From Trichosphaerium sp. ATCC 40318 (Eukaryota; Protista; Tubulinea), in contig JALMLS010000585.1 in NCBI GenBank assembly GCA_038496445.1, forward strand, positions 124,001-188,000: a stretch of 64,000 nt of DNA. Direction: 5' to 3'. The notes beneath the pieces were generated by a model. The model did not search any database. It was not told where the DNA came from and saw only the letters and a list, made by a program, of their open reading frames with translations. Positions within the stretch are counted from its first letter, which is position 1; each line of letters opens with the position of its first letter. This document shows positions 18,513 through 46,963 of this stretch, piece by piece. A program made the position numbers and the translations under genes.

Positions 18513-19748
18513 CCTGTAGAGAGAAGAAGTTGGCTCTTTCCCTTTTGTTAGCCGTTTTTTTAATCACGTGATGAACAAACTATAAAAGTATCTTCAGCAG
18601 CTTTTTAGGACAAAGATTTGTTACGAAAACATTTTGTACATGAAGCTATGTGTACTTTTGAGCAAAATTTGTGTAATGTAAGTAACCTGACATAACACAG
18701 CTCTTCCATTTTATTTCGTTTGTTTTTCGCGTTCGACATTTTGGGAAATAAGTCACTTGAGTAGTACTTGCAGTTTTGTCTTAAAGGACAAAATGATTGA
18801 AAAATTAGTATTCTTTGTAGCTATGATTCAACATTGAAAAACGATCGGGGTTAGATTAGTTTCATTTTATACATGAGGTTCTTATGAAAACTGTGATCAT
18901 TTTTTCATGATTACGATTGAGAATAGTAATGAGGTAAAAAGCAAGATTGAATGGTACATGAAGAGAGGTCAAGAATTTGACAATGGACACGTAAATATTG
19001 TGGCATCAAAACGGAAGCAGAAAGCTTTATTCTGCTAGCTAACAATATTTTTCAATTTTGGTTTGGGTTTTTAAATCGCGTGTTCCAGTTCATAATTTCT
19101 CCTACCGTGGATCACATTTCAAAACCCCGGATATGCTAGGCCAAGTAAAATTGTCAGTTATGTAAGAACTAACAGAACTTGAAAGATTTGCCAGATCTAA
19201 CTCGAAAACCGATAGTCACAACAGCAAATTTGAACAACATGTAAAAACAAAAACTAAAGTTTGGATATGAATTCGAACTGTTGTCTCATCTACTCTACAG
19301 CTATATACAAAATATAACAATAGAATAAGTGTTATTTCTTCTAGATATTAATGTATTCAAAGAACGAATTTTATCACTCATTAATAGGATGCCATTTCCA
19401 TGATTACTTTGTAGTTCAATTTTATTCAAGCGTATACTTTGGAATCACTGTTATGATGTTTGTAATATCTGTAAGTAAGTAGCGCAATACCAACAATAAT
19501 ACAAAGTAAAGCAACACCACATCCTATACCAACATAGAGAAAAAGGAATAATTTGTCATCTCCACATGATGCTGAATCATTACGAATTAAATCAGACAGA
19601 TCAATTGTCTCAACATTTAATACCTCACAATCCTTTGTTTCAACTCTATCTGATACTTGTGCATAAAGGCATCCTGGAGGTAATGTAATGGTTGCAAAAC
19701 TTTCAAGTTGTATTGTGATATCTAGAGTAAGCTGAGTAACAGTACATA

Positions 19749-20400
19749 CAGGTCTAAAATTTTTGAGCTGTTTTTATGGTAGATACCATGAATTTGTGGT
19801 ATAATTATACCATTGATTACAATTTTATACCACAAATTCCAGTATAATATACCATAAATCAAAGACTTTATACCATGAAACAGCCAAATTATACCATAAA
19901 TATGCAGTAGAAAGTGCGAATTTATACCATATTTTTTCACCTGAAAAAATGCAATATATGGTATAATTCTACCATAAAACATGGTATAATACACAGTATA
20001 ATACCATAAAGCCTGGTATATTATACCACCAAGTACAGTATATGATACTATATAACTTGGTATTGTGTACCATAAACAGCAGTATCTTATACCACAAATC
20101 ACAGTATAGTATACTACATAACTTAGTATCTTGTACCATAAACAGTGGTATATTATACCATAAAACTTGGTACTTTGTACCACAAACAATGGTATACTAT
20201 ACCATGAAACTTGGTACTTTGTACCATAAACAATGGTATATTATACCATGAAACTTGGTACTGTATACCATAAAACTTGGTACTTTATACCATAAACAAT
20301 GGTATATTATACCATGAAACTTGGTATTGTATACCATAAATAACCAAAAAAACCAGTTTATTGTACTACAAAACACAGTATAAAATACCATAAATATCAA
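19749..20400. repeat. Left TIR plus subterminal array of TATACCA/TGGTA motifs in ~45-70 bp imperfect units
   Basis: Many copies of tataccat/ttggta, e.g. repeated tataccataaaacttggtactttgtaccataaacaatggtatat. Confidence 0.9.
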
Positions 20401-20419
20401 AAATCCCATACGATATTGT

Positions 20420-22627
20420 TTAAAACTCCAAATATTCACTCAAAGCTACATCTTCAATGGAATGAAGGCCTATTTGATTTTTAACTAATATTTTGTTAGA
20501 TAAAAAAAATGTAAGCAAACTTACAAGAGAGAAAATGCGTAGCTAATTTGTCAGCCTTGGAGTCATAGTGCAATTCCCGAAACAGTTGCAATAAAGCTTT
20601 TTTGCTCAAAGTTTTCTTATGATTTGCCTTTATTCTCGCCAAAACTATTGATTTATCATCCTACAAAACAATTAACACTTTGTCAAACTTTGTGAGAGCA
20701 CTTGTTTTTTTTCAATCAATGTGGCTTTTATCACGTATCTTGCCACCATCTCTGAGCTATCTCTACAACTTTCAATTGAACCTCCTAATACCTTACTTGT
20801 CGTCAAATCAATAGATGCCGGCACAACTTTTTTATAATTGGCGATGCTGGTTTCAAAGCCAAGTATTTCATCTACATTTGCACTTGGACCTAAAACATTT
20901 GAGATAAGGAAAAAAAAAAAACCCAATGTCTACTTACAGTACGTGTAAATGCTGTCAGAGCTTGCAACAATAGAAAACCAAGCACTAGAAAATAGTAAAG
21001 ACAATACACTGTAGCATAGTAAAAGAAAAGTACATGTTAGAGGTATAAAAGTCATCTTCTATGTCGCCGATTGAGTCAAAAACAATAAAATGATTTTCCG
21101 AATTCTTGTAAAAAGGAATCAAGGCAAACACAGAATGGTTCTTCAACTCAACATCCTAAAGATATTTAGCACAATACCTACCAATACATGTACCATTGAA
21201 GAAACAGCCGATAAGTCTTGCTTTAAACCAATCACCGTGACTTTGTGGTAGTAATCTTGAATTGTTAACAAAAAAAAAAAGGAGTGCAATGTACCTTTTT
21301 TTTTACTACCAAAAAAAAACCTGTTAGCTTCGTCAAATGCAATCCACACTGTACCTTGCTATCTTTGCCAAATTCATATAAGCATCCATTTGCTGTGCGT
21401 TTGGTGTACCATCTGAGGTAAACAACCATATAAAATCTTTAAACTTAAACTTGAGATCTCGCACTGAAACTACATCGTTTAACAATAGCCGCTCTTTCTT
21501 TTTTTTTTCTACAGGTGCTTTCTCATTCTCTTTTTCAAGACCTATATCGTGTCAAATGTGAATAAAAGCAAAGAAATCAGCTGTACCAGTAGTATTGGCA
21601 TCCACGTTCACAACAAGTTTGTCGACACTGTTATTACTTTGTTCACTTTCCTCGACACTTGACTTTGTAGTTTCTAATAAATTTATTATATCAGCTATAT
21701 CCATATCACCTTCTGAATCATCAATAAATGTGTCGCTACAACAGGCATGAGAGGAAAAAAAAAGAAGGAAAGAAGCACGTGAAAAATAAAAGCCGCACAT
21801 GTATTTGTAATGTCCATTTGTTGTAAAGTAATTGTGGCCAGTTTGTTGATATTTTCCATGCTTATTTTGTAAAGCATCCATTGTGAGCGTGTAGTATTCT
21901 GTAATCTGAACAATATTAAATCACAAATAAATAAGCAAAAAAAAAAAGGTAAATTTACTTTTCGTACCCATCCTTGTACCATTTCTTTTAAAGCCACAGT
22001 GATTGTAAAAGGAATCTTAAAATGAAACACTTTGTTTTGAAGTGCTAAATTAAAAATAGCAACTAATAACAGGTTAGGCACTGAACGCTAAGTTGATTAT
22101 GCTTTACATACTAACAGAAGCCTCTGAAATCTGTGGAATTTTGGATTTTATTTCTACCAAATACCTGCTCACATACGCTTTAAAAGTCCTTGTAGTTAGT
22201 AAATAGTCATTGTTAACTTGAGAGTAGTTCAAGTCGCATTTTGCAAATTTTGGGTTTGTTCTCCACGTGGTTTTAAATGCTTCCCATGTTTTTTTTTTAG
22301 CACTGGAACTAAGAGCTCCAGCCTCTAAATAAAGTCTTTGAGCAATAACACCAGCTTCCGACTATTGCATTATTAGTGTGGTTTTTAATACAAAAACAAG
22401 TGGTAGCGCACGTTTGTAGTGGCAATCTCCGGCTTGGATTGATTTGTGGTCATGCCAACATTTTGCTTTATTGTCTTCACCTCCTGTTCTAAGGCTCGAA
22501 TGTGATGTGCAAGCTTTCTAAACTGTAATTAACAACTGGTAGAATAATAACAAAAAAAACCATACTGAACCAGTGCTTTCAAATTTTCCTCGTTCATTTG
22601 CTTCTTTGATGGCGGCTCAGCAGACAT
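20420..22627 (-). CDS. Transposon-encoded protein of unknown function (possible accessory/TnpA-like), multi-exon
   Basis: ATG at 22627 (MSAEPPSKKQ, NLS-like), several GT-AG introns, final exon CLHSIEDVALSEYLEF* at 20420. Lies immediately downstream of the transposase. Confidence 0.55.
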
Positions 22628-22692
22628 GGCGTGCTTACAAAGTTGTTAAAATTTACTAATTTAATTGACTACAATGATGAATACAGAGTTTT

Positions 22693-25600
22693 TTAGGAAG
22701 GAATGGCATAGTGATAGTAGTTAATGAGCTGCTCTCCATCGTCACTGGTTGTATATACTTGCGCTAGCTTGTACACATTTTTTAGTGGTACACATGCTAT
22801 TGTGTCAGCAAATTCAACGCTACAGCAAAGTCAGTGTTTCAAAAGCAAAGAGTGAAGGTTTTGCACGTCAATAGCTCGCTGTTGGCATCATATGGGTTGT
22901 TTGGGTTTTTTAAAATAAAGTACCTAAAATTACGTGAGTAAATTAGTTGTTGCACTACTACAAACAGCTCACTCTCCGAATACAAACACTTGATTATTGT
23001 CAGTGATGCTTTGATAGATGGCTTGAGTTTTAACATATATGCAGTCTTTTTTAGTTTCTCTCTTTGCCGGTCTCCATGATTTAAAAAGAGTTTCATTTGA
23101 GACAGACAGCTTCATTGTCAGATCTTCCATTGTTACAGAGTTATAAGAAACAAACGGTTCTGACATAAGTCTCCTAGTATCAGCAGGGAATGTAGCCTCA
23201 AATGCTAATTTTTCCATGTGGCATAACTCTCTAACACACCTTTTGTTGCCTAAAAACAAAGTGAGATGTAATTTTTTTTATTTGCATTGCTTACGTAAAA
23301 TCCAGAGTGCCTTTTGTCTTTTGTAAAATGGAGGAGTGATCACTTTCCTTGACAATTCAACGTTATCTTTGTATTGATTGTGTAGCACAGAAGTGCAAAG
23401 GGCATCAAACTTGCCAATATATGATAACATTAACCATGGTATTTCTTTGTCTACTATGTCCCTATGCTTTGTTGGTGTATGTTGAAACAAAACATTTTGT
23501 ATACTTTATTTTGTCATGGTTCTTCGATGACAGCTTCCATTTTTTGATGGTGGCATGCTTAGATTCACATGCATAAGTGCTAATAATGTACAGTTAATCA
23601 CAACCATGTTAAAAGTGTACCTAAAGTGTTTAAAAACTCCAAATCGTTTAATCATGTATTCATAATGGTAAGGCACGTGAAAGTTTGTTGTGTCTAAATT
23701 TAACTCTAATAAGTTGTCAATGATCAGACACATACAAAAAAAGTAAATTGCAAACAGTACCAGGTAAATTAAGCTTTATTTCATTCAATAAGTTTTTGTA
23801 TTTGATTGTTACACTTTTGACTTGACGTTCTGACATAAAATCTCTTTGTGTCAATACTACAAAAGCCAACAAGTGTTTCCTTTAAAATTGGTCAATAAAA
23901 AGACAACACAAAGAGCTTTGAGAGGTACCACATTGACATGAGGTCATCAGGTAAAATGTGGCGAAAAACCAGAGCAGACATTTTCAAAAAGGTCCTCATG
24001 TCTGTTCCGTCCCAACTCTCAGATACTAAACATCCTGTATTATTCCACACTGCCTTCATTCTAAAATGACTTTGAATCAATACATCAAGTCAACAACATG
24101 TACATACTTTCCTAACCCTGTATTTTGTTTTCTAACATACTTGATCCTACGATTTAGAGTTTTTTTAAAAGTTTCTTTGGGTTGAAGCTCTTGCATTTTA
24201 GCCAATGCCGCATCCAACACATTTTTAGCTATACCCAATATGATGTTATGAAATGGACAATATGGAGAATCCAAAAAAAAGTCAAAGTGATAGTTCAGCA
24301 GTTTACTGAACGGAGACTAAAAAAAAAAAAAATACCAGTTAATCTAAAGTAAAACTAAATTCGTGGTTTGTTGCTCACCTGCCTGTGAATGCTAAAACAA
24401 TCTTTAATGTGATCACTGTATGAGTGTTCATGTGCCATGGTGAGGATTTGGTGTGTGTTTCTTGTGGCTGTTACAATCTCATTGTCTTCTGTAATTAATT
24501 GAAAGGCATTTTTTGGCACTCTACATATTCGGCAAGGATAATGAGATGTTGGACTCCTCATTGCTAAAAGTAACATAAATTGATCAATAATGAAGGATTT
24601 TTGTACATATCAATCTATTTGAGCCTGGTGAATCACCCAATATCTTAGACAACCTCAAATACACTGTGAAGTACTATTTTTGGATTAAATTGTAAAAAAA
24701 AAACCAATAAAATTGGCACGTACCTTTTGTTCACTTTTTATGTAACATCTCATGCCATTGTACACCTTTAAAAAATCATTTACAACATGCTCCAATAGAT
24801 CTTCTTCATGCAAACACTTTGGTAACACAGCCAACAACATTTTTCCAGTAGCACTGGCACTGTTAGGTAAATTCCAAACAACCATATACAAAGGCCCCAA
24901 ACTGTCTTTTTTATCGTATGTAAAATCATCCTTGCTTATATATGCTATTGATTAACAGTGAGTAGACAATCAAAAGATAAGTATAGTGTACCTGGGAGTA
25001 AAATAGTGTTGTCTTTGTCTGCCTCATAAACATCAAGTACATCTGCAAACACTTTTTTCACATTGGTTCCAGTTTCTGGACCTTTGTATACCTTCTCTGC
25101 TTTCGTAGTTCCATCTTCATAGTGCGTGTGCATTGTGGCTGGTCCATCAGTTATACATTCAGTGATGCTTTTTCTTGTGGGCAAATAATACAACACTCTT
25201 TTGATATGCTCTGATGGAGAGTAAAAAGGAACTTGTGTCGTGTATACAACTTTGTCTGACTTGGTTTTCTTGTCCACTGATATTATTTCAGGTGGGAATT
25301 GAGGCAAAAACTAGTATAAAACAATAAGCAAGGACAAAGGCATATACGTCTGATAAATGTACTTTTGTAGCAATTTCTTTCAACAATGTGTTTACAGAAA
25401 CAGACACAGTGCCTAACAAAGCCAACATAAGAGATAATCACAACGTGGTGTGTTACATACCATTAGCGTCAAGTCCAAAAAGAACCAAGGCAGTATTGAA
25501 CAGCTCTAAAATTTTTTTACACAAAACCAAAGACAGTTTGTGTTCCAACTTTAGCGCAAACAACAAATAACCAAGCTTTTGTTGAGGAGAGGCAGAGTTA

Positions 25601-26085
25601 AAGTCATCACTTGGCTCAAAATCTGGAGGCTTTTGTTCTTTTTTCCATTGCTCATCAGACAACTGTTCGAATTCTTTAACAAACAAATTAAATGCTACAC
25701 TAATTGTTACAGTTAACTCACCACTGCGCATAGCCTCACCATCAACACTTAAAAAGTGTGGAAGAGTTGTACATGGTAGCTCCGTATTGTCATCTCTTCT
25801 TAAATATATTGGTTCCACAAACTCGTCACTGACACTGCTTTCATTGCTCTCATCACCGGTGCCATTGAATCCACTGTCCGCACTACTTTCAGAGTCACTA
25901 CTGTGACTTATTGCATTGCTATTGGCATCACAATCTGTATCATATAGATTAAAAGCAAGCAGGTGGTCGACACTTTCACTGGCATTTGCTGAATCTCCCA
26001 AATTAATATCATGAGTTCTAATCCGTTTCTTTGCTTTGCTAATGTTATTGTTTCTTTGAGAAAAGTCTCTACCTCGTTTGCCCAT
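22693..26085 (-). CDS. CMC/EnSpm-Plavaka-type DDE transposase, multi-exon
   Basis: Spliced motifs: AYISKDDF...LGPLYMVVWNLP (first D ~24928), ILGDSP (second D ~24632), PCRIC (C2C), CPFHNIILGIAK, FHVPYHY (H3H), FSTYACESKH (E ~23564). This motif order is characteristic of the CMC supergroup. Confidence 0.88.
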
Positions 26086-26352
26086 TCCTATAATTAACTA
26101 AGTACATTTGAGGTATTTTGTACATGTACCTAGCTTTATGGTCGCCGCTGTATGTTTATTAGATTTTAAGTGTCTGTAATGATAATGTCTCCATGTATAC
26201 CATGTCTTACAAGCGTCACAATACACGTTAGCCATTGTTGCTTGTTGTTAATTACAATTAAGAAAAAAAACTCCACTTAATGAGCATAAATTTATTTATT
26301 GTTTCCTACACAATTTATCTAAACCTATGAACAATTTAGACGTTTAATACTT

Positions 26353-29190
26353 TTACAACCAACGTACAGTCACATTTTCGCTTGTCTTCTTTGGATAGCT
26401 TTCCTGTGTAGGCAAAACGATTTACTAGTGTTGGTAATACTGTAGTAAAAGAAACATTAGAAAAAAAGTTGCAAAAAAAATGATACCATTTAATTGTTTG
26501 ATCGTGTTCCAATGACAGCTTTCTTTACTTATTATTTCTCCATCAGACATCTTTTTGGTAGAAGGTTCATCACTGAAGATGTCCAAGAATAACGGACGCT
26601 GTTTGCAACACTTACAGTTAAGGAGAAGAGAGAGGTTATTTTCTAGACGTTTGATAGTTCTAAAAACCACAACCGGCTGATTACCATAATAAAGAAAGCC
26701 ATGAACATACCACCTTGACACAATGCCAAGTTGTCGGCTGCCTATGATACAATGTTAATAGAATGGAAACCTATGTCACGTTCTTACAACCAAGTGTATT
26801 ATAGGCAACATCAGCCTGATGTTTTAATAAAGTGCAAGGAGTTATAAAAAAAGTGCAGCCTTTATCTTCACTGTCATTTTCTCGCTGTAACTGTAGTGAC
26901 TTTTTAATAAGCTCTTTAACTCTATCTTGAGATATTTCAGTTGCAGTAGAATATACAACTGCCCACTCGCCTGAAAAATATCTGCAAATAAAATTAATGT
27001 AACATAACTGAAAAGAATCTTGACGTACTCTTTGGCAACACATTCTTTTTTAACCACCACTTTTAAACCTACTCCTGTATGTCCTTGAAAGGTTTTTTGA
27101 TAAGAAGCAATCAAACCCATTTCATACAAACTTGAAGAGATATTAAAACAACTTTGTGATTATTAATAAAAACGCACCCAGGTAGATTGTAAATTAAAAG
27201 AGTTCCAGGGTGTATAATTGTTTCTTTATCGTCGTCTTGTGGTAGTTTATACGGAGAGGATAAAAGGAAATGGTTGTTGGCTTTGTATCGTTGATTGCTT
27301 GGACACACAAATAAAGAGTGTTTCATTAATGTGTGCGTGGCATAAGATTTTGAAGATAATCCTACCAAACGCTTTTGTTTTGTGATAGCAAGATCAGTTA
27401 TTTTGGGCAGTTTTCGAATAAACTGTCTGACTATCAAAGAAAAATAACGAACTCCTTTAGGGACCATAACTTCAACAGAATGTCGCACAACTCCTGGACC
27501 AAATCCGTCACCATCATCTTGTACACCAGTTGCCAACTCAATGTTGCTTAAAGCCCACACAAAATTAGTCCCGCTGACTTTAAGCTTTCCACCATCTAAA
27601 TAAATACATTAATCTCTTATAAAATAGGTTGTATTTGACGTGCTTGTTTGTATGATGATGTTTTTGATAGGTTTTTTTCCTCCGTCCTTCAAAGCAAAGC
27701 CAAAACACGTTATACCAGTGCGGCTATGTAATTGTCCTTTGTCTCCATCTGTGTGCATTCTTAGGCCTGATTTACCCGTAGGCCACTCCTATAAATAGTT
27801 ATATTTAACCGTTGTACACGATATACGTTAAACCCACCTTTAACTCTATAACCATGTCTGCTATTTCACTTTCATTTAGTGCCTTTGCGTTGGTTGTAAT
27901 TTTGTGATGGGCATCTATAATAGGCAGCAATTGATCCCACTTAGCTTTATCCAGTTGAATGGGTATTTTAATCTCAGAGTTTCCACAAAACTTATCTTTA
28001 TGGTTTGTGTCAATCACGATACCAACCAAGTAAGTTACTTACCGGAATATGGTGTCACACAAACCACTTTACCATAATTTTGAGTTTTATATCTTCTCAT
28101 AATGTTTGCTTCCCACAAATCACCGGGCTTAGACCAAAACTAACAAAGTAAAAATGTTGGTTCTGACGATGGTTACGTACAGTGTGTTTGAGATCATTTT
28201 TTGACTTCTCAGCAAACTTTCTGCACACAATAAGCAATTCATCCGGCAAAGTGTATGTTGTAAGCCACAATTTTGACACAGATCCTTGCCAATCGATATT
28301 CAGCTTTGTAGAATTGGAAACATTTGTGACTACAACATCTTCAGTGTCTTCATCAGTTTTTTTATTATTGTCTTGTAGAATAAATTAGAAGACAAACATT
28401 TTATATTTGTTCAACTCGTACCTTTTTTAAAGTGGTTTACAGTAGGCATTTCATCGCATTTAAGGTAATTAAAGGCCATGACTACATCTTGTGGCATAAT
28501 ACTTGGTTGTAAAGTGCCATAAGGAACAACAGAACGCCTTTTTTTCGCTGTTGCAACAATAAGTTGTTGGTTGTTGATGTTAATGTACCTTGTTGTCTTT
28601 TTTTTCGTACTTTCAAAGCCATACGTACCAAGGCAGCACTAGATATATTATGCTTCTCTCCTTTACGTTTTATCTGTATTGGAAAAAAATGAGAAATGTC
28701 TAATACTAAGAAACCGTACCTTATTAAGCTCTTTGTATGTGTTTGCCGTTGGAGATCTTACATTTGCTGGCAAAACGCTTTGCACTATCCACTTTGTATG
28801 TGTCTTAGACATTAGCGTCGCATGTAAATTACATTCTTTAGCCCACGGCTCCTCCAATATTGTTCCTCCTCCATTTTCCACTGTAAGTTCTAACAGACTT
28901 TTGAGACCAATAACAGCGTCTTTTATCTTCTCTCTTTGCAGCTTAAGTTCATCGTGTTCATTTGCATTTGGTGTCTAGGAGAGTAATTAAGATTTGAGCG
29001 TTACACAATGAAACAATTGTACCTTACAGCTTATGTCATTCACATGGCATGTTACCTTCAAGTCCTGTATACGTGGTTTTTTTGACGTTGCTTTGGAGGA
29101 GTTGGATAAACTTCGCTTTCTACGCTGTGGTTTAGTCACAATAAAAAAAACCCTCTGTATACCTCTTAGATGTATTTCGTGCGGACAACA
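26353..29190 (-). CDS. Transposon-encoded protein containing a putative 2-oxoglutarate/Fe(II) dioxygenase domain, multi-exon
   Basis: Spliced ELKEWPTGKSGLRMHTD (HxD at 27747-27755) ... VVRHSV (distal His ~27480) ... VRYFSLIVR. The model requires one GC-AG intron (donor GCACGT at ~27643). The start codon is uncertain. Confidence 0.6.
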
Positions 29191-29939
29191 TAAGCTAAGC
29201 GTTGTTACCTACTCAGCTGTTAAGTCTAAATAAAGCAAATTTAAAAACGCGCGGCAATGCAGGAAAAATCAAAAAAAACCAAATAATTTGAAAAAAAAAT
29301 ATCAGAGATAACGCGAATGGCTAAAATCTCTTTTTTTTAGGTGGAGTGTACATTTAAGTACTTTTTGGAACTATTCAAAAAAAAAAAAATAATATTGGGA
29401 GAGTTTTTGCGCTAAGGCCTCGCAATGGTCCTGACTACGCGCAAAAACCACATTGGCGCCAAGTCACTTGCGGGCAAAATTGAACAAAAACCTCCAGTTG
29501 GAGGAAAATTGCACACACAAAAAAACTCTTAGAACTTGAGTTAAAAGGCCTACATAACCATAATGCGTACCTTTACCTTCTTTGGTTTATAATTTACCGA
29601 GTAACGCTAATGAGATTTTAGATGGTATTCATCAAATAAAACTGGTTGCACGTACCTCAAGCTGTGTTCAGCTGTATTTGCGTTAAGGAAGATTTTCTAC
29701 CACTTTCTTAACGCAACTAAAGGATCCCCAAAGGTACGCTATCACGTTATTAAGTACTTGGGATATTATACGCCCGCGCTACGGAATAATCAGTAAATAT
29801 ATATATTTTAACGAAATGTCTTTAAAACTAACGCTAAACTACCTTACGTACGTGCAGGGCTATTTTACACAGGTGCGCAACTCTAAAGCGTGTCTGGACA
29901 AATAATTATAACTTACGCTCATTAGGTAACGTCGTCAAG

Positions 29940-30220
29940 TGGTTAAGCCCAATATTTCCCCACGTTCTGGTTCTCCAAGAAGCAAACTATCGCAGTCACC
30001 ACGAAAGAAGCACTATTCAGCAACTAGGTGAACTGTACAGGTGCAGATATTCGTTTGAAGCGTCCAAACGGTTCGGGCGCGTCGGGTCCCCTGACATCGT
30101 CACAGTGCGTTAAAAGCGATAGTAAGCCAACTATCAATAGCTTACAAATTTAGGCATGCAAGCGCAGAAGTTCAAAATGGCAGGTGCTCTACAATTGACA
30201 ATGGAAGCTTGGGTACGCAT
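29940..30220 (+). pseudogene. Captured fragment of the neighbouring ROCO gene (copy of 15227-15508, inverted in the window)
   Basis: By-eye alignment: 8 substitutions and one 1-bp deletion over ~280 bp. Confidence 0.95.
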
Positions 30221-30792
30221 ATTTACACTTGCTGATAAAGCCGTGTGGCGTATAGTGTAGTTAATCTACTATTTGCTTCCTGCTTTCCAATTGATCGCCA
30301 CATTCTCACTGTACTTCTACTTAGACTCTACCAATGCGTGTGAGATATTTGGCGACTAGTAATTCAAACAAAACACCAACACGGCCAGAAGACTTTACAG
30401 AAGTACTCAAGCGCACTTATGGCGCTTCTACACACGGAAAAAGCAGCGATATAAAAAACAAAGAAAAGTATGCAGTAAAACGCTCTCGAAGAGATCCTCT
30501 AGGCAAGGCATTGGCATGGCAAGGTACTGTCGAGTGTAATTGTATTTTATCACGCTAAAAAACCGCTGTTACACTCAGCGTAGTGAAATTAATGCTTACA
30601 GCAATCGTTTTGCACGTTTGTCATACTGACAATAGCTAAACCGCTCTAGGTACTGACACGACAATCCTTGTTGGCTCTCCTCACCTTCAATTCCTGATAC
30701 CAGATGATGTATTGCTACCAAAGTCACTAGATCGCTTTGGAAAGTTTGTATTCAAGGTAACTACCGAATTCGAGAAAAAAACCCCTTTACAC
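30221..30792 (+). other. 572-bp unrelated segment inserted in the captured ROCO copy and flanked by a TACGCAT duplication; contains exon-like pieces
   Basis: TACGCAT at 30214-30220 and 30793-30799. The ROCO copy resumes at the same source position after the insert. Confidence 0.75.
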
Positions 30793-31273
30793 TACGCATT
30801 TTTTTGTACTATTTATTATTACTGTGATACTAGTTACTGCGTAGAACGCAATTTTTGGAATAGCATGCACAATTTTTTTTATGTCTGCGTTACTTGCTGG
30901 TGGTGATTTACGAGCATAATAATCCAGATTCAACAGTTTTTTTTTTAAAACCTCATCATTGGTCATCGTCTTTTTGTAAATTTCCATTTAACTTGTGCAC
31001 AGCGATACTGGACCGAACCTGAACGCTAGCTTACCTAATCTACCTGTTGGTACTCGTGCATCTCAGTCATTACCAAAGAAGAGCAAGAGAAACAGCTTGC
31101 GCAAGCGTCGATTTACTAAACGGAGTCTTCATGGCATTTTTAAAGATGTATGCTTTATCTTATTGTGTTTGAAAAGTATTTTTATCGAGTATTAATAGGG
31201 TCCTCCATCACCTCACACTGATATTAAATTCGCAAGGTGTAGGATAAACGAGATTATTGTACGTTTTGACCAA
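30793..31273 (+). pseudogene. Second captured ROCO fragment (copy of 14550-15233 lacking a ~218-bp block)
   Basis: Near-identical ORFs 30995-31195(+) and 14628-14828(-); intronic sequence is retained. Confidence 0.95.
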
Positions 31274-31289
31274 ATATCTTTCTTAGTAG

Positions 31290-32345
31290 ACATTGACTGA
31301 TATTGGTCCAAATCGTATGGCAGTGTATGCAAAGCTATTTACTCACCAGTTCCATTTGGTATGTCTGTTCATCCGTCAAAAGAGAAATTTCACTTTTTTT
31401 TGCATTTTTTTTTTGATTTGGTTTCCTCGTTTGCTTACGTCTTTCCAACACCAGTGCTGAGCAGATTTCTATCTCTCTTGATGGTAAACAGTTTGCATTG
31501 ACCGTTGAGGATGCTTCTTCAAGTGCTCAAGCTTGGACAACTGGTTGGGATATCTACACTGTAAACGTTGGCGATAATGGTCCTGAAGATCCAATATTAA
31601 TTGCAGGGTATTTACTAATACTTGTAGCTGTTTTTTCTAACGTGCTTCTTCCCTAAGATACACCTCTGCAAGAACACAAAACCCTGCATACGCTCCATCT
31701 TCAAAGTGGCTTGCTTACGGGTTTATCAACGATGGGTTTTTTGTTTCTCTAAGAATGAAGTCTTGGCCTTACACTCATTTTTAGTGCTATGATAAGACCC
31801 GGTTATGAAGCTGATCAACTCTATGTTGTTCTATATGATGAAGTAAAGAACGTTACTTCAATGCTACCTCTGGTAATAGTGTTTGAAAAAAAAACCGTTT
31901 TTAACAGCAAACGTTATTTGTTCTGTAGTTCGTCCTCACTCGGAGTATATGGGCGTCTCCAAAGAAGTATTCCACTTGAAGACCTATATTGATAAATGCA
32001 TTCACAAGATTAAGACAAGTATATAACAATGGGAAACACCTATGCTCGTAGTTCAAGGTGGACATGATTTCAGAGTACACCAATCATAAAGCAAACAAAA
32101 AAACCCCCAAACTAACGCTTTTGATAATAGGTACACATAGGTCAAGGTATTGGTACAGTTACAGCTTTACAATGTCAAGGTATGAATCAAAACTTTTGTT
32201 CCTCAAGGTAAGTATAGTCCCTTACATAACATGTGAATACACGTGTTGTTCAACAGCGTTCTTACTCTTTTTGTTAAGATAGGAAGTCATTGGGTTTTGC
32301 AACTGTATAACGGTATTGAATGGTACTTTGAAGTTCTTGCTAGGA
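31290..32345 (+). pseudogene. Captured, internally deleted S9C dipeptidyl-peptidase-5/acylaminoacyl-peptidase fragment
   Basis: AWTTGWDIY, PAYAPSSKWLAY and AMIRPGYEAD (propeller part) are joined to WETPMLVVQG, QGIGTVTALQ and HWVLQLYNGIEWYFEVL (catalytic C-terminus). Stops and frameshifts are present; introns are retained. Confidence 0.75.
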
Positions 32346-32856
32346 AGACAAGTACACCTCAAGTACTACATACAGTAGGCGTATTTTCGTTCATGCATTA
32401 TGCTTACAGCTTGAAATTTTTCTGGTAAGCCTTAAACAGCGTATATACGCCATAATAATACTATAAAAGGTCACCAGTGGTAGGTTCCGTATACTTTGAA
32501 TCATTTGGTACGTTTTCAGTAAAAAAAACCCTATGTGGCGTTTGGCACTTCTAACAGTGTACCTTCAAGGCCGATGTAAATCATGGGTCGTACCTTTAGG
32601 TTTTTTTGTGGCATTTTTAATGAGGTACCTCTGTTTTTTTGCTGTACAAAGTTTCAACATCACTACCTTTGCTTTAGTACTGTGGTACTGTTTTGAATAC
32701 TCTGGTATGTGAGTATTGTTAACCTTTTAATTTAGTTGAAGAAAACGGCCCTGCACCTACAGAAGCGGTACGGATCTCTTTCAATGGGTTATATCCACTA
32801 GCTTGAGAAGTTCCGAATTATTAATGTGTGTCTCTCTTTTTTTTTTTCGTGTAAAG

Positions 32857-33335
32857 GTTTGGCGTAGATTGTACTTTGCAGTATTGAGTGGTAACGTTGA
32901 ATCAGTTAAAGTGGTTTTATTGCAAGGTGTTGATATCAATGGCAAGATAAGGATGTATGTAGCTTCAACAGTGATGAGAAATCGCACCAATTACTTTTTT
33001 ACTTTTTTGGTTTGGTTCTTTGTAATAATTTTTGCTAACGGTTGATAATGTAGGGTGACTGTATTGTGCACTTGGTGTGTCAAAAGCAACATTTGGTGCG
33101 AATTACTACTTGTAATTTTTGAGATTATTCAAGCTGTAGATACCATTACAGCGTTTACACACTTGAGTTTATAGTACTGACAACTTACCCCTCTGTTTAG
33201 ATTATAGTCAATGAATTACTAGTGTATGGTGCTACAGATGTTCTCGATAATACGGTAAGCGTAGATTAAGATAGTGTAGACGCATAGTGCTTATTTTTGG
33301 TTTAGGGCATGTCGTCATTGCACGTTGCTACCTCA
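32857..33335 (+). pseudogene. Captured ankyrin-repeat gene fragment
   Basis: LYFAVLSGNVESVKVVLLQGVDIN, IVNELLVYGA and GMSSLHVA, separated by GT-AG introns. Confidence 0.65.
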
Positions 33336-33659
33336 TGAGAGACCTGCACCTCCACCAGCGTGTGCTTCCTCAGCTGACGACTAGAAGAAGCAAAACATGT
33401 TCCCAAAGTAGAAGCAAACTCCTGTAGTTGATAGCGGTTTTCAACTGCAAAGAGCATCGACGCCTCCACCAAAGCCTAGTCAAAGCGTACATAGATATAC
33501 CTATTAAGAAGGGTGTTCGTAGAGATGTACCATTACATCACAAGCATGACGTGTTCATACTACATCTTCTTGTACGTATCAATTTCACTTCATGATTATG
33601 AACTCACTTTTAAAATACAGCAAGCGGTTTACCAGCATTACCAGTTTTGTAGAACGTCA

Positions 33660-34590
33660 TGGCTCCAACCACAAAAGCGCCAACTACAGAAACTCCAACT
33701 ATGAAGGCTCCTACCTCTGTAGCACCTACTACAGAGGCACCAACAACAGAGGTCCTACCACTGTAACGCCTACTACAAATGCACCAACTACAGAAGCTCC
33801 AACAACAGATGCACCTACTACTGAAGCACCAACCACAAACGCTCCACAACAGATGCTTCAACCACAGATGCGCCAACTACTGAAGCGCCAACGATTGAGG
33901 CACCTACTACTGAGGCACCTACCACTGAGGCTCTTACAACTGTAGCACCTACTACTGAAGCGCCTACTATGGAGGTTCTCACGACCGAGGCTCCAACTAC
34001 AGGAGCTCCTACGACTGAAGCTCCTACCACAGATGCGCCAACAACTGAGGCTCCTACCACTGTAACGCCTATTACAAATGCACCAACTACAAATGCTCCA
34101 ACAACAGAAGCCCCAACAACTGAAGCACTACAACTGTAGCGCCAACAACTGGTACTTTGTATTTTACTTTTTAAAGCAACTAACTTTCTTTGTAGATGCA
34201 CCAACTACAGAGCTCCAACAACAGATGCACCTACTACTGAAGCACCAACAACTGAAGCTCCTACCACTGAAGCTCCGACAACTACAACACCAACTACAGA
34301 GGTCCAACCACACAGAAGCTCTGACGACTACGACACCAACTACAGAGGCTCCTACAACGAAAGCGCCAACTACTGAAGCCCAAGTACTTACGCTCCATCT
34401 ACTGCTCCAACAACAGAGGCTCCAACTACTGCGCTTACTACTGAGGCACCAACAACTGAACTCCAACTACAGATGCGCCTACAACCAAAGCTCCAATGAC
34501 AGAAGCACCAACTACAAAGGCTCCAACCACAGAAGCGCCAACTACAGAGGCTCCTACGACTGATGCTCCAACAACAGACTACACCAAGTG
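33660..34590 (+). repeat. Degenerate 15-bp coding tandem repeat encoding (APTTE)n mucin-like sequence, frameshifted
   Basis: Repeated GCNCCNACNACNGAR units with indels, and an intron at ~34152-34195. Confidence 0.9.
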
Positions 34591-34705
34591 ATCGCTGCCT
34601 TTTACTCGTGGAAATTCTGCTTTGTTTTCTCTGGTGACTTACTTTATTTTTTTTACTCATTGCTACTCTTTACTGACATTGTGTCCTAACATCTGCTTGT
34701 TTTAG

Positions 34706-34892
34706 GTTGGAACCTTGTGCTGGCGGTGCTGTATACTTACTTGCACTCACAGATTTAATTTTCATGGTAGAAGGTACACGTGGTTTATAAAAAACTGAAC
34801 AACATTTCTTGATTTATGTGACAGTTTTTCTTACTCTGGTGTTTTTTCTAGATACATCATACATGTTCATCACAGGGCCAGAGGTTGTAAAC
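34706..34892 (+). pseudogene. PCCB: Captured two-exon fragment of a propionyl-CoA carboxylase beta-chain (carboxyltransferase) gene
   Basis: PCAGGAVYLLALTDLIFMVE / DTSYMFITGPEVV matches the conserved GPCAGGAVYSPALTDF.FMV..TSY.FITGP.VV; the intron is retained. Confidence 0.8.
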
Positions 34893-35064
34893 ACCAACAT
34901 TGCACCGCTGTCTTGTCAATAAATAACATTACAAAAAACTCGTTGTTTTTAACTCTTTTGACTGTGAGTTTTTAGTTTTCACTGTTTACCATCAGAAACA
35001 CCCGCTTTAGGTATGTATTGTTGTTTTAAAGTCTTTTAAGTCTTTTAACTTATTATTTTATTGT

Positions 35065-35258
35065 TTTTACTTATAATCGCCCAAATAACAATAAACCTAG
35101 GTATCCGCTCAGTTTTATAGCGCTTTAAGCCGTTTAGGCCATTTAACTCTTTATTTTAGGTATTTTACTTGTAAACGCCCAAACAACAACAATTCTAGGT
35201 ACATGCTCAGTTTTATAGTGTTTTAAGCCATTCAAGACATTTAACTCTTTATTTTAGA
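35065..35258 (+). repeat. Two-copy ~98-bp tandem duplication, each unit containing a GT...AG intron-like segment
   Basis: cgcccaaa...ctaggta...gctcagttttatag...catttaactctttattttag occurs twice. Confidence 0.75.
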
Positions 35259-35282
35259 TTATTGGCTTGTAGAACGTCAAAA

Positions 35283-37182
35283 ATGAATAGAAAAATGCAA
35301 GCAATAGTGCTCGCAGCAGGTACATATTACATAATAACTTGTAATGACATTTGTCATTAACACATTTTATAGCTTCTACAAATGAAATTGAACCTTTCAC
35401 ACGCTCTGATTTGAGGCATCACAGTACTGTTTTGTGTAATTACTTTGGCAAGCACTTGCAGACTGTGACTAGCATCAATTCTGGCTTCATTCACGTTCAT
35501 GTCATATCTACGGGACAATTCCGTCAAAAGTACTTTAGCAATTTTGGTGTGGTTTTCACTGTTAACATCTTCTAGTACTTATGAAGATGCTCTACCTATT
35601 GATAATCCTATAGATGCACTACTGCAGTTTCATAAATCTCGTGATGCTGTGTGTACTGTTGCTGGAAGAGAAATTCGTGGTTCAAGAAAAATATATTCTG
35701 ACTTTTATCAATTTAGCAATGACAAACACTCACGTGTTGTTGATGCTGTTGTCATGGATGCTGAACTTACTTTACCTGAAATAGTACGGTTTTTTTTGTT
35801 TGTAAGCCACCATATCAACTTATAAATGTAGATGACGAGAAGTAAAATTGTGAGAATAGTAATTCTTAAAGTCAATCTTACTGAATCATGGTGTCTTTTT
35901 GATCTTTTGTCACAAACACCATTATATCCTCCACCTCTCAGTGCGTGTATGTGTATCAGTTAATAGTTTAATGAATCAATAGGTTTGTGGTATACTATTG
36001 GCAAGGTAATAGAGAAGGCAGCTATGTCAAAACATGGTAGTTCAATGTACGTTATTGATAAATATAAATACAAACTATCACCTTTTGTGTTACTAACACT
36101 TGTATAGAGATGATGCCCAAAAGAAACTATTGACTACAATTGTAACTGAGCCTTATCAACCAAAATTGTTGATGATTCCTGGCGAGATCTTCGAGAAGAT
36201 TCGTGGTTTTTGTGACATTGAATTTGATCATTGTTTTTCATTGGTGTGTTCATATTTTTTGGCTCCATTGTTTATTAAACACCACGGCTGTTGGGTCAAA
36301 CATGGAGTGTGGATAAAAAATAATGAGGAAAAAACCAAAGAAATACGAGCTATCTTTGACTATGGACGGTGTATCAAAGTATTATTGAACGTAAGAGTTG
36401 GTGTAAAGTTATACAAGTACGAAATTTTTGTTTGTGGTTTTACAGTTTAACAATTACTTGCTTTATATAGAGATGTCTTTCACTTCAGTGTAGAAGGTCA
36501 GTTTTTGAAAGGAACAAGAAAAATAGTCACTGAAGATAAAGAAGAAGTTGTCACTGTCAGATTTACTACCAACGCTGCCACTTACGAGATTGAAAATTCT
36601 TTTTATTTTCAAGATACACTTTATACTTCTAAAACAACCTATGCTTTGGCCAACAAAAAATTGTTGTTAGTTTCTGTAACAGCTATTGTTGGCTACAAAC
36701 TCTTTCCAGTGATGGCCATTGACTTTCAAGATGAAGATCACCTTGAGTTTTACGACAAGAAAACAAAAGATATTTTATTTGAAATATCCAATGAGCAGCT
36801 TTTTGATTATGTGGATAACACTAAAGAAGGTACCAAGATAACTACATTAACCATTTGTCTTTAATTTTATTGTTTAGATCTCAATATGGATGAATTTGGT
36901 TGTCAGCAGCTTTGTACTGTTTGTGAGCTTCACCAAGCCACTCATCAGTTGTGGCCTTTTGTTTACGAATGGCTCAAATACAAAATAGATATGTTAATAC
37001 CCGATTGGTACTATCCAAATGTCCTTTACTGTCAGCCGCGCATCCATACTATGGCAGCACTGACAACTTTTGAACCTTTATTTGCTGTATCTAACTTTAC
37101 TGAATGGAATGAAGCGATGGATAGGTTCATACTAGTGGCATTAAGCTATGAACATCACATACGTTGTCATGTGTTTCAATAA
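35283..37182 (+). CDS. Transposon-borne multi-exon gene: degenerate nucleotidyltransferase-like N-terminus followed by an F-box-like motif and a beta-rich region
   Basis: MQAIVLAA and LLQFHKSRDAVCTV recall the NTP_transferase/eIF2B-gamma N-terminus; LLMIPGEIFEKI recalls an F-box start; long open exons. The domain calls are weak. Confidence 0.4.
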
Positions 37183-37289
37183 ATGCAATTCACGCTACTT
37201 CATGTAATTGTTTTTTTTTTATTTACATACTACAGTAAAGACCAAACACGACACAGTCATTGTAAAATATTTGACATCATAAAAATCCA

Positions 37290-37473
37290 TGAATATAGAT
37301 ACAGTATAAAACATGGTATATTAAGTCTTATACCATATGTCTAAAAATCACGGTACTATACCATAATTTGCAGTATAATTTTATGGTATAATTTGTGATT
37401 ATACCAAGGTAGTACCATAAACCACAATTATACTGCAAAATATGGTATTATACCATGATAATTTTCAGACCTG
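37290..37473. repeat. Right subterminal TATACCA/TGGTA array plus right TIR of the giant element
   Basis: Repeated atggtata/tatacca motifs ending in ttttcagacctg. Confidence 0.85.
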
Positions 37474-37987
37474 TACAAACCAGTTAATAGTAAAAGCACA
37501 TGTTCTTGACTTTACCTGGCGGACATTCCAGAAAGGTGACATTTGTTCCTGGAGCAAGAATGATAACAGGAGTAGGAATATTGCCTACATCAAGGTGAGA
37601 AAACTTGGTTAAAACAAAGGGTTTATGGCTTACCATCAACAGTGACATTGCCTTGAATTCGAATTGAAGGTAATGGTTCAGAATCAAAAGGAAAAGTCCA
37701 AACACCACGAACACATGTAGCTAAAGGTAATGATCCTGAACATGCACTTGTAGGAGGTTCAGTCGTAAACAAGCTGAAAGCTCACCTGCAAGGCAGTGCC
37801 ACCTTTTGTTTTGTAGATGTAATCTAAAGATATTCGCGATTAGCAGAAAAAGAAACTTGAATCTCACTTTTAGGAATTGACCTGGATTATCAACAAGTTA
37901 TTCAGTTCATTGTTACTCATAGCCTGAATAATTTCCATACCTCATATTTGATAAAATGGATGCTATTAGGTGTTACAATGTATTTGA

Positions 37988-38344
37988 TGTCATATACACG
38001 TCTCACGTGATGACTTAGATGACTTAAGCTTACATATTCATGGCTTATTCGTTCTTTTGCTCTTTCTTTATTTGCTAAATCTAGGTTCCTGCAAATTAAC
38101 TAATCGTTCACATATTTGCTTCGTGATGTTTCGTGTAGACTATGAAAACCATTATCGATGTCTATAGTCTATTGGGATGTTATTATCACGAAACTTGTTC
38201 ACGAAGTAACTCGAAGTCTATTCAAGATGTTTCACACGCCACGAGATACACTCACTTACTAGAAACGCTCATCTAAGACATTGTAATACGTTCATGTAAT
38301 AAACAGATTTAACTAATTACACAAGCGTTACAACATCTCTTACA
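37988..38344 (+). repeat. 5' LTR
   Basis: Direct repeat of 46964-47320 with two C/T differences. Confidence 0.97.
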
Positions 38345-38356
38345 TTGGCGACACGA
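38345..38356 (+). promoter_or_regulatory. Primer-binding site (TGGCGAC..., possibly complementary to a tRNA-Ser 3' end)
   Basis: TTGGCGACACG immediately follows the 5' LTR. The tRNA identity is inferred, not checked. Confidence 0.65.
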
Positions 38357-41300
38357 TCATTATTTTTATACCTTTGCATCTCCTCCCGAGACTTCCTGTT
38401 TACACAAACTACTCACGCACTTTGCTTGGTGTGGGAGAACCTATATGTCATAACCGTAGCTTTGCCAAAATACTTGTGGGCTGGTAGAAAACGCCCTCCA
38501 TAACAGCTACGTCATTACTGCTTTACGTTCATCGTCTCTTTTGAAGTTTCTCTTTATCACACATTCACATTATGTCAGGCGTTCCGATTTCCGAATTGGA
38601 AAAACAGATCAAAGCTTTGGAAGCTGAAGTTAAAGAAGCTAAACGCAGAGAATCACGTACCTTTGCTACAACTGCATACACAGTCCCTTCTTCACATGTT
38701 ACACCTCGATCAGCGGATAGACGACAACGTCTCCAGACTACAACTCTGAAAGCTCCTCCGATGCCGAACCTAACACAATAACCTGTCGTTAAGATACAAA
38801 ATGCAGCGCTCAAAAAGGCACGCGAAGAACTCGGCGAACCTGAAGAAGATGCCACAGAAGATGAGAAAAAAGAACACGAAGAAGCTTTGGGAAAGAAAAC
38901 TCGCATTTATTTCACAATACAATTCCAGAAGGTATTCAGGCAGAAACAACTGGAATTAATACAATCCGAGAACTTTGAAGCCGTTTCTACCGATTTGGAT
39001 GCTCTTGTGGTTCTCGAAGATGAATATGGTGGCGATAGCAATGGCACCGAGCCTGTGCCTACACAACCGGCATTTATTCCGATGATGTCGAACCTCGAGC
39101 AAGATTTCACTCCTTTTTCTGGCACGAAGAAAGAGAACGTTCATATCTGGATTCAGAACGTACATACTCGATGTTCCAAGTTATTTATGCACGATTCCAT
39201 GCGAGTGGCTTTCATCGAAGACCATCTTATCGATCACGCGAAAGAATGGTATCAAGGACACATTCGAGGCAAAGAGGTCACTGCAGATGAGCTCCTCAAC
39301 GCTTTGAAAGAATTTTACAGCAGCTCTGGCGATGCTAGAAAATTTCGACAAGAATTCAAGCACTTCTATCAAGGAAACCTTTCCGTTCGAGAATACGCCG
39401 CTTCTAAATCCGCTAAAGCTGCTTATGCTCACCTTCCTCTAGATGGTTACTCACAGATCGAGTCTTTCACAGATAACCTCCGAGAAGATATACAGACGCA
39501 ACTTTATTGTCACACTGGCTCTGAGTTCGAGACTTGGAACGAAGCTGTCAAAGCCGCTATCCGTATTGAAGAAGCTCTCGAGCGTATTGGGCGTAACAAA
39601 AAGCGCATACAAAAGTCCAGAGGATCTACAAACTCTACAAATTCATCAAAACCGGCGAAGAATACAAAAACTGGTTCTGGTTCTACAAATTCTCCTCCTC
39701 GAATTCCACGCGACAAATGTCTGGACAAAACCAAGTGTCCAGATCCCAACAATGCCTCCGTCAACAAATGGTGTGATAACCATGGCTTCTGGTGTGCTCA
39801 TTCAACAGATCAATGCAGAAAGAGCGCCAAACAAAACTCCATCTCAGTCATTCCAACCGACAAAGAAGTAGAAGCTGCCCTCACAGAGAAGATTGTCAAA
39901 CCACGACGTCCGATGGATTATGATATACAAGCTGGGATGTCTAGATTCGATACGCCTCTCAGTCCGTATCACCCTCCCAACTTTGACTTGAGATCCGAAG
40001 CCGTTATCACTGAGATAATGCCTCCTGGTCAGAATTATGTGGAGATTCGACTCAATGGAACTCCAATAACAGCTTTGGTAGACACTGGCGCAGATAGATC
40101 GGTCATTCTTGCGTGTGCTCTCAATCTCATCAACCAACCCTACTCGCTAGAAGAAGCAAATGTAACCGGTACAGTTGCTAGTGGCGGTAAGGTTGAATTC
40201 AAAAACAAAACCTCTGCCCTTCAACTTTCTTTGGCTCCAAACATTGTCGTGAACACTTCTTTCCTAGTTTCAGATGAACTCAGCGACATTTGTATTCTTG
40301 GCAACGATATCTTGGGTAAACACAACATCGGCATATTCCCTCAACGCGGTATTCTATTGGTCAACGATCATCACGAAGTCCCTCTCATCAAGAAACCATA
40401 TGTTTCTAAGAAGCTTCTCAAACAGTCTATTCTCCGTGCTGAAGATGATGTGGTGATTAGTCCTCAAGAGACGGTTGTGTTGGCTCTAAAAACTGATGTT
40501 TGCCAAGGGCTCATTGGAGTTGCAAACCTCTCTAAACGCCTCGCTCATGAAGGACTGGCTGGAGCTTGTGTTTTAAACACTATCGATAAACGGAGAGCTT
40601 ATTTGCAAGCCACCAACTTATCGAAATGCTCCATCTACCTTCAGGCAGGTCAAAGAGTTGGGCTCTTCAAACCTCTTCGTGCAACTACACAGATTAGTTG
40701 CCTTTCGACTCATATCGGTCAGGTCTATTCAGATGCGTTTATGGAACCTGCCACCTCCTCTTTCGTACGTTCAGTTGATCCTAGTGACCCAGCTGTTTCT
40801 GCTAGCGATGAATCAGTTGTTAGTGAAGATTCCGAAGAAGCGTCAGTTTCTGAAAGTTCTAAGCTTAACTCTATGAAATCAGGAACAGTTAACTCTGACG
40901 TACCTACTTCTTCTGGAACATCTAGAGCTGGAGATAGCGATTCCAGTCTTCGTGTAGCAACAGAAGAAGAAAGAAAACATATCTTGGAACTATTCGATCT
41001 TTCTGATAGCTCATTGACAGCTGAGCAACTCCAACGTGCAACCAATCTCCTCGCCGCCTATTCCGACAGATTCGAAGAAGAGATTCAAGCTCCACGTTCA
41101 ACAGAAGTCAAACTGAGGATCGACACAGGCGACTCTAAACCAAAGGGTCAGCCTCCAAGAAGATTTCCACCCAAATATCGCGAATTCATCGAAGAATTCA
41201 TCCAGTCTTACAAACAGCGAGGTTTGATAAGACCTTCCACCTCTCCATGGGCTGCACCTATCGTGGTAGTCCCTAAATCAAATGGTAAGCTGCGATTCTG

Positions 41301-41513
41301 TATCGATTACAGACAGCTTAATGGTGTTACGAAGCGTGATGTCTATCCTTTACCAAGAATCGATGATGCTTTGGATGCATTATCAGGTTCTACCCTTTTC
41401 TCGACAATGGACGCTACGTCAGGATTCCATCAACTGGAGATGGATCAGGAATCAATCGAGAAAACTGCATTCATAGATCAAACTGGTCTCTATGAATGGC
41501 TAGTCATGCCGTT

Positions 41514-42095
41514 ATTGTAGGTAAAAGAGTGGCTCTTTGTACCTATTATATAAAATCAAAAACCAAACAACCAAAAAACCAATTAACCCAGCATTGTGTG
41601 ATCACAAGGTCAGTGTAATACAGTGTGTAATCACAGATGCCAACCTTGATACCAAATCAAGGTTGCCTAGGCTAGGTTTTACATTCTATAAACAAGCTGT
41701 GTGGTATTTGAATATAATGGTTGATCATACCTATTAAAATGGTTGTTTTTACCTATTAAAACGGTTGTTCTTACCTATTATTGAATCAATACAGACACAA
41801 CAACCGAAAACACAAGCCCAACAAAGAGCCATCACACATAAAGACAACACAGTGTACCATCACAGACGGACAACCTTGATACCAGATCAAGGTTGACCTA
41901 GGCTAGGTGCAACAAAACAAAGCAATCAAAAAAAAAAAACCAAAGTCAACAAGTAGTAAATGATTAACAGTGGTGCAACAAATGGTTGCTGGTCCCTATC
42001 CTGATTGACAGAAAAGAACTCAAACTTCAAGTGCAAACGGTATAAGCAACCGTGGTTCGTGTAGCCCATGTCCTGACACCATCATCCACAACTCT
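41514..42095. mobile_element. 582-bp TIR-less insertion in RT with a 3-bp GTT duplication and internal hairpins; class unknown
   Basis: Splits ATG CCG TTT GGA (MPFG); GTT at 41511-41513 and 42096-42098. Confidence 0.85.
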
Positions 42096-42477
42096 GTTTG
42101 GACTCACTAACGCTCCTCCTACTTGGCAGAGATACATGAACTTGGTTCTAGCTGGTCTCACGTGGAAGCTGTGTCTGGTCTACATGGATGATGTTATCGT
42201 ACCTTCTGTAACCTTTGAGGAACATCTTGTCCGCCTTGAAGCGGTATTAAAACGATTTAGATATTATAACATTACACTTAAACCCTCCAAATGCCACTTC
42301 TTCAAAACTTCGGTCGATTATTTAGGTTACGTGGTCTCTCAACATGGAATTGTGCCAAATCCAGCTAAGATAGAGTCAGTCCTCAACACCAAAGCACCTA
42401 AAGAACCACGTGACATTCAACAGTTTCTTGGGCTAGTCAACTACTATGCACAGTTCGTTCCAAAACTTGCTTCTAAA

Positions 42478-46951: not shown

Positions 46952-46963
46952 GGTGTGGGAGAA
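46952..46963 (+). promoter_or_regulatory. Polypurine-tract-like sequence
   Basis: GGTGTGGGAGAA lies immediately before the 3' LTR. Confidence 0.65.

Follow-up and report, generated by a model that had tools for sequence, protein, structure and literature searches.

The 64,000-nt stretch of contig JALMLS010000585.1 of Trichosphaerium sp. ATCC 40318 analyzed here (the window) contains a 17,725-bp element, which runs on the plus strand from a CAGGTCT terminus at position 19749 to an AGACCTG terminus at position 37473. It is very likely a full-length transposon of the cut-and-paste type, potentially autonomous, that belongs to the CMC/CMCT clade (EnSpm/CACTA, Plavaka, and their relatives) and whose family is unmatched by catalogued sequences. 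Both the GC content of the window and its short introns agree with the published values for the Trichosphaerium genome (37.7% GC, mean intron 75 bp; PMC10521059), and a text search of that genome paper gave no mention of transposons.

Boundaries and insertion site

The case for regarding the 17.7-kb unit as a single element is strong, because its excision restores both an intron and a reading frame and because neither end has another partner terminus inside the element or nearby. The plus-strand junctions read CATA/CAGGTCT at 19749 and AGACCTG/TACA at 37473. In silico removal of the element together with one TA leaves, on the minus strand, a GT-AG intron of 67 nt (37515-37476 joined to 19748-19722), which links in frame an upstream host exon and the final exon of a single-pass membrane protein. 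The features of both ends are as follows.

19722-19748, minus strand: 3' part of the interrupted host intron, with its acceptor at 19722; the final exon of the single-pass membrane protein comes next
19747-19748: left copy of the TA target-site duplication
19749-19762, plus strand: left terminal inverted repeat, beginning with CAGGTCT
19790-20390: left subterminal array, with TATACCA in both orientations and a 22-bp period at 20001-20340
37310-37459: right subterminal TATACCA array
37460-37473, minus strand: right terminal inverted repeat, terminating in AGACCTG
37474-37475: right copy of the TA target-site duplication
37476-37515, minus strand: 5' part of the interrupted host intron, with the donor at 37515

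The terminal inverted repeat is short (approximately 13-14 bp) and imperfect, with one indel. The termini, the TA duplication, the arrays at both ends and the short GT-AG intron with its restored frame had all been proposed in a first-pass annotation of this DNA, and all of them stood at the positions given above. The TATACCA heptamer occurs 81 times in the window against 9 occurrences expected, with a maximum of 17 in 100 shuffles; the left array (19797-20336) accounts for 23 of these, the right array (37314-37455) for 6, and a miniature inverted-repeat transposable element (MITE) in the vicinity, described below, for 39. For the interrupted membrane-protein gene, no clear start came to light when its 5' part was followed (37520-37950, 47325-47500), and this gene may be short or already damaged.

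The 2-bp duplication of the earlier annotation was likewise confirmed, being TA for the giant element and AA for each of two MITEs with CAGG ends. The target-site duplication of the CAGG elements is therefore a variable 2 bp (TA, AA, AA) and not TA-specific, which excludes both the TA-specific ESTA elements and Tc1/mariner. The latter, despite the TA duplication, is also ruled out by the C(2)C/H(3)H insert of the transposase.

Coding content and the predicted transposase

Four genes were modeled ab initio, by hand, between the two ends, and the models were cross-checked by a simple automatic splice search, which recovered exactly 14 of the 15 hand-chosen introns of the transposase. All four splice without stop codons using GT-AG introns, mostly of 36-66 nt. 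The three minus-strand genes are arranged head-to-tail (747, 943, and 528 aa) with gaps of 100 and 65 bp, and the fourth, of 516 aa, is on the plus strand, so that the earlier description of the gene set is retained in the form of stop-free models.

20420-22627, minus strand: gene 3, 528-aa model, 14 exons, in the position of CACTA open reading frame 2/TnpA
22693-26235, minus strand: DDE transposase, 943-aa model, 16 exons
26336-29191, minus strand: gene 1, approximately 747 aa, with possible 2-oxoglutarate- and Fe(II)-dependent (2OG-Fe(II)) dioxygenase motifs (HxD, distal His, Arg)
35283-37182, plus strand: gene 4, 516-aa model, 8 exons

The transposase model includes an N-terminal C2H2 finger, the first-Asp motif at residues 369-375, D454, C474-x2-C477, H548, H691-x3-H695, and E715. 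The order D, D, C(2)C, H(3)H, E is that of the CMC transposases, and D, D, and E are intact; the CMC-type assignment of the first-pass annotation was thus upheld by the motif check. CMCT elements have been defined by C(2)C and H(3-4)H motifs that follow the second D and precede the E, and mostly have CA..TG ends and a duplication of 2-5 bp (PMC12730594). The giant element possesses the motifs of this definition (DDE, C(2)C, H(3-4)H) as well as its ends (CAGG..CCTG, with a 2-bp duplication). Judged by its motifs, the placement of the transposase in the CMC/CMCT clade is well supported.

Profile and database searches were carried out exon by exon. When the transposase exons were scanned singly against Pfam, there was no match, PF18759 included. 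Among 1.84 billion representatives, the sole real relative of the first-Asp exon was P0001, a metagenomic fragment of 76 aa (41%; E value 5e-7), and no relatives were found in metagenome, viral or bacterial contigs. The other two of the three matches to this exon, P0002 and P0003, proved to be repeat proteins and were discarded as spurious. The named Atlas look-alikes of P0001 are DUF1280, RAG1 RNase H, Plavaka, and Transposase_21, with scores of 0.82-0.85; four CMCT-clade families are found among the look-alikes, all below 0.9 and to be taken as leads only. The top look-alikes also include unnamed bacterial clusters. The predicted fold of the first-Asp exon was of low confidence (predicted local distance difference test, pLDDT, of 50), and fold-based searches were disregarded. 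P0001 and P0004, both from European Nucleotide Archive metagenomes, are two similar, real transposase fragments, the longest contig being 10,178 bp for each, and P0001 ends at the same intron position as the exon in the window. These two fragments point to a related element in another eukaryote.

Several points weigh against the interpretation of the unit as a full-length transposon with its own accessory genes. The flank common to the empty and filled alleles was not found in the Joint Genome Institute metagenomes. The gene models are ab initio, and in the exon-by-exon search no element gene matched a relevant Pfam or PHROGs family. The main exon of gene 1 drew a blank in a search of 5.8 billion proteins and in viral contigs, phages, PDB sequences, and the Atlas, while its single-sequence fold reached a pLDDT of only 37. 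Finally, one donor alone could be traced for the cargo carried between genes 1 and 4.

Gene 1 and the putative accessory genes

Based on its motifs, gene 1 would encode a 2OG-Fe(II) oxygenase, and we lean towards this assignment. The model contains HxD at residues 360-362, His429, an Arg 11 residues on, and a second Arg seven residues further. The spacing between the two Arg residues is 7 compared with 6 for the R-x5-R of AlkB, the triad was identified by eye, and PF13532 was unmatched; the His-to-Arg spacing is 11, and PF12851 (TET/JBP) was also unmatched. By eye, the pattern falls between those of TET/JBP and AlkB. The C-terminus has a faint SRA-like resemblance, also by eye, and how the HxD exon is spliced to the H..R exon is ambiguous (near 27640-27573). 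With home-made profiles of AlkB and of phage TET/JBP, the exons of gene 1 did not score above 1,130 decoy pieces, the profiles being too narrow, since they missed each other's family. The label "dioxygenase-domain protein" given in the first-pass annotation is accordingly to be read as a motif reading, for which the profile and fold tests were blank or gave no clear signal. As for the other two genes, faint Ulp1-protease-like motifs were noted by eye in gene 3, which has no Pfam match, and an NTP-transferase-like N-terminus together with an F-box-like segment in gene 4, without Pfam support.

An unlikely reading, albeit the one to which we give most weight among the alternatives, is that genes 1, 3, and 4 are not functional accessories but old captured or fast-evolving orphans with chance motifs, and that gene 1 is not a dioxygenase. 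All three lack database, profile or fold support, the Arg spacing of gene 1 is exact for neither AlkB nor TET, and joining its motif exons requires a weak donor, a long intron or a frameshift. However, these genes are open across 8-14 exons while adjoining true cargo that is full of frameshifts, and the HxD, His, and Arg of gene 1 occur in the correct order with roughly correct spacing. Moreover, the blank result with the local profiles is uninformative, because they missed each other's family too. If the putative dioxygenase is real, it would bring to three, with those of fungi and red algae, the number of eukaryotic supergroups known to have giant CMC-type transposons with a DNA-modifying enzyme of their own, and would point to counter-silencing in the CMC clade that is either repeated or ancient. 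Without the enzyme, the element would be a well-defined but ordinary new family for the repeat library.

Relationship to described elements

The first-pass annotation had presented this architecture as undescribed, a claim that is not borne out as worded, since precedents are found in the red-algal giant Plavaka (10.1101/2025.02.11.637652) and in the fungal CMCT elements carrying TET/JBP genes (PMC12730594). The giant Plavaka of Bostrychia measure 17.4-19.1 kb and include a DDE transposase, three accessory genes, one of which encodes a putative 2OG oxygenase that was detected weakly, and inverted repeats in tandem arrays (10.1101/2025.02.11.637652). [quoted passage not shown] In contrast, the arrays of the present element are subterminal, it carries host-gene cargo, and its host is probably amoebozoan; the red-algal elements are compared here by their published description.

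We consider it quite unlikely that the giant element is no more than a representative, in an amoebozoan, of the giant Plavaka already described, sharing the accessory-gene strategy of the Bostrychia elements. Besides the likenesses listed above, such membership would agree with the 2-bp duplication, as in PlavakaA/B, and with the presence of Plavaka among the Atlas look-alikes of P0001, although its score (0.82) was no better than those of RAG1, DUF1280 or Transposase_21. The termini are CAGG rather than TGT or CATCA, and PF18759 was unmatched on every exon. For the red-algal PAG1-3 cassette, which pairs an N6-methylase with SET and ParB with a 2OG oxygenase, there was no Pfam match on the scanned exons, and N6-methylase/SET or ParB motifs were not visible by eye in genes 1, 3, and 4.

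Among the fungal CMCT elements, EnSpm, ESTA, and PlavakaB carry TET/JBP genes (Kojima 2025, PMC12730594). The TET-positive elements share with the giant element C(2)C and H(3-4)H, CA..TG ends, a 2-5 bp duplication, and a dioxygenase or dioxygenase-like gene adjoining the transposase. They differ in that their gene is a TET/JBP, whereas gene 1 is a putative dioxygenase by its motifs, and in their termini, which are CAC (3 bp), CATCA (2-3 bp) or those of the TA-specific ESTA, compared with CAGG and a variable 2 bp (TA, AA, AA) here. The ends are neither TGT..ACA nor CATCA..TGATG, as would be expected of PlavakaA/B, and the duplication is not restricted to TA as in ESTA, given that AA is duplicated by a MITE whose ends and motif are the same. 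The CACT(A/G) ends and 3-bp duplication of the plant EnSpm/CACTA elements are also missing, although subterminal repeats in both orientations are present. These terminal differences, together with proteins that are near-orphans, are the reasons for which the giant element is filed in none of fungal PlavakaA/B, ESTA, and plant CACTA. The plant En/Spm and Pack-CACTA elements (PMC6379663) have in common with it a short inverted repeat, subterminal repeats in both orientations, a second gene downstream of the transposase, and internal host fragments; Pack-CACTA elements are, however, non-autonomous, while the present element keeps intact genes and lacks both CACTA ends and a 3-bp duplication.

In toto, the giant element probably represents a new family among the giant CMC/Plavaka elements with accessory genes, a kind already known, and what is new here are the CAGG termini, the orphan proteins, and the probable amoebozoan host. 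The earlier proposal of an undescribed family can thus be kept in the sense of a family or lineage within a known clade, for which the termini and the orphan proteins argue, but the design itself was already known.

Mirage belongs to CMC and generates a 2-bp duplication. Compared by description, it shares that duplication and the CMC motifs with the giant element, but Mirage elements are not known as multi-gene giants.

Captured host sequences

The approximately 5.8 kb between gene 1 and gene 4 (29400-35280) consist of broken gene pieces, one of which could be traced to a gene outside the element.

14550-15508, minus strand: donor in the host, a RhoGEF-like gene represented by its 5' exons and introns, 4.2 kb beyond the left end
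29940-31273, plus strand: captured, inverted, and frameshifted copy of the 5' part of the RhoGEF-like gene, split by a 568-bp foreign fragment, with microhomology joints
31274-35280, plus strand: further cargo, including gene fragments such as an ankyrin-like piece (near 32870), a mucin-like PTTEA array with frameshifts (33662-34578), and a tandem duplication of 98 bp

The labels are weakly founded, with a Pfam E value of 0.04 on one exon for the RhoGEF-like donor and of 0.08 for the ankyrin-like piece. The cargo copy is 97.6% identical to its donor (18 substitutions in 759 bp) and frameshifted, whereas the host copy is in frame; the cargo copy has suffered a 200-bp deletion and received the 568-bp insert, bounded by microhomologies of approximately 14 and 11 bp. 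In gap-filling capture, donors are usually less than 5 kb distant and the joints show microhomology (PMC8277862), while Pack-CACTA elements have been explained by a neighboring-insertion model (PMC6379663). The RhoGEF-like capture fits gap filling better. Because the donor is local and the joints carry microhomology, at least this piece of cargo would belong to the present copy and not to the family. The earlier annotation of some 5 kb of host cargo therefore stands, with host gene fragments and an identifiable donor between the ends, but not the suggestion of a Pack-type family, since the traceable piece looks local and copy-specific. Single-copy Pack-TIRs likewise have donors less than 5 kb away and breakpoint microhomology (Tan et al. 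2021, PMC8277862); they were described in animals and in other superfamilies, whereas here several donors are strung together in a full-length element. In the captured neighbor gene, capture would be seen under way in an element that is still of full length.

The outward-facing CAGGCG/CGCCTG motifs at 14546 and 14975 might be taken for transposon ends, a reading that was rejected since they have no matching duplication and sit within or next to T-rich introns of the RhoGEF-like gene. They belong to an imperfect outward-facing inverted repeat (14511-14546 and 14975-15010) having a 12-bp CAGGCG-T-run core in common, which flanks part of the captured segment and also lacks a matching duplication. 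The 98-bp tandem duplication lies directly upstream of gene 4 (35025-35276) and is possibly its promoter region or the cargo boundary.

It is improbable that the 17.7-kb unit is a hybrid, in which a three-gene element and a second element comprising gene 4 and the right end captured the intervening DNA and then moved here together. The mechanism is a known one (PMC6379663), the arrays are asymmetric (23 versus 6 motifs), and gene 4 lies beyond the cargo in the opposite orientation. Nevertheless, neither an internal terminus nor a leftover array was found between the ends, and the cargo is a mosaic of short pieces from several genes with microhomology joints instead of one continuous interval. 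The traced piece, moreover, duplicates a gene 4 kb from the present insertion site, and the CpG depletion of gene 4 equals that of the other element genes, which argues for long residence. That the two ends derive from separate small elements and match by coincidence can practically be dismissed, for even with an inverted repeat this short, and with TA being frequent in a genome of 36% GC, removing exactly the 19749-37473 span gives a normal-length intron and a reading frame, and a partner terminus is absent near either end.

CpG decay and a proposed mechanism

Of the 18 substitutions between cargo and donor, 7 are changes from CpG to TpG or CpA on the cargo side. Such changes affect 7 of 78 CpG positions compared with 3 of 228 others (Fisher p=0.003), and none occurred in the reverse direction. 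The observed/expected CpG ratio, which ranges from 0.75 to 1.1 in host regions, falls to 0.52-0.69 in the element genes other than the transposase and to 0.39 in the transposase itself. From the one-way decay and the low ratios in the element genes we infer CpG methylation by the host, which is the simplest reading of these data. One-way decay in a dated local duplicate would be a built-in indication that transposons are methylated in an amoeba that has received little study.

The proposed mechanism takes as its model En/Spm biology, with its TnpA and subterminal repeats. The DDE enzyme would cut at the CA..TG ends and insert with a 2-bp stagger, and an element protein, either the gene 3 product or the transposase through its zinc finger, would bind paired TATACCA sites and join the ends. 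The same element proteins would mobilize the 1-kb MITE with matching ends and motif. A break within the element, after or around its arrival here, may have been repaired by template switching onto the nearby gene and other host genes, which would account for the patchwork of defunct gene fragments separating gene 4 from the three-gene module. The host would methylate CpG in the element, and gene 1 may have been retained as a counter-silencing or DNA-modifying accessory, by analogy with the TET-positive fungal elements and the red-algal PAG3, as its motifs suggest. In its most far-reaching form, which we regard as speculative and rather doubtful, the proposal is of a new lineage-level CMCT branch in Amoebozoa, with CAGG ends and a variable 2-bp duplication, in which a dioxygenase fused to a methyl-DNA reader, along with protease-like and F-box-like accessories, would reverse CpG silencing while autonomous members keep gathering host pieces.

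Neighboring non-autonomous elements

A young Ty3/gypsy long terminal repeat (LTR) retrotransposon is located at 37988-47320, with approximately 510 bp separating it from the giant element's right end, and is flanked by a 5-bp TTTGA duplication. Its pol gene is broken by the two MITEs with CAGG ends.

42478-43537: non-autonomous element of 1,060 bp that shares its CAGGTCT ends and TATACCA arrays with the giant element and has an AA duplication, within the young Ty3/gypsy element
44287-45323: 1,037-bp non-autonomous element of a sister family, with CAGGGCT ends, ATGCC arrays, and an AA duplication

Excision of either MITE restores the pol frame of the enclosing element, whose LTRs differ at 2 of 360 bases (99.4% identity). 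Since the MITEs are inserted in an element with such similar LTRs, the CAGG elements must have moved recently, and the 1,060-bp MITE is likely to be a client of the transposase of the giant element family. The two MITEs are found in an identical target context, TCTAAA followed by GC, from which the site of the giant element differs; the context common to the MITEs is hinting at a target preference beyond the 2-bp duplication.

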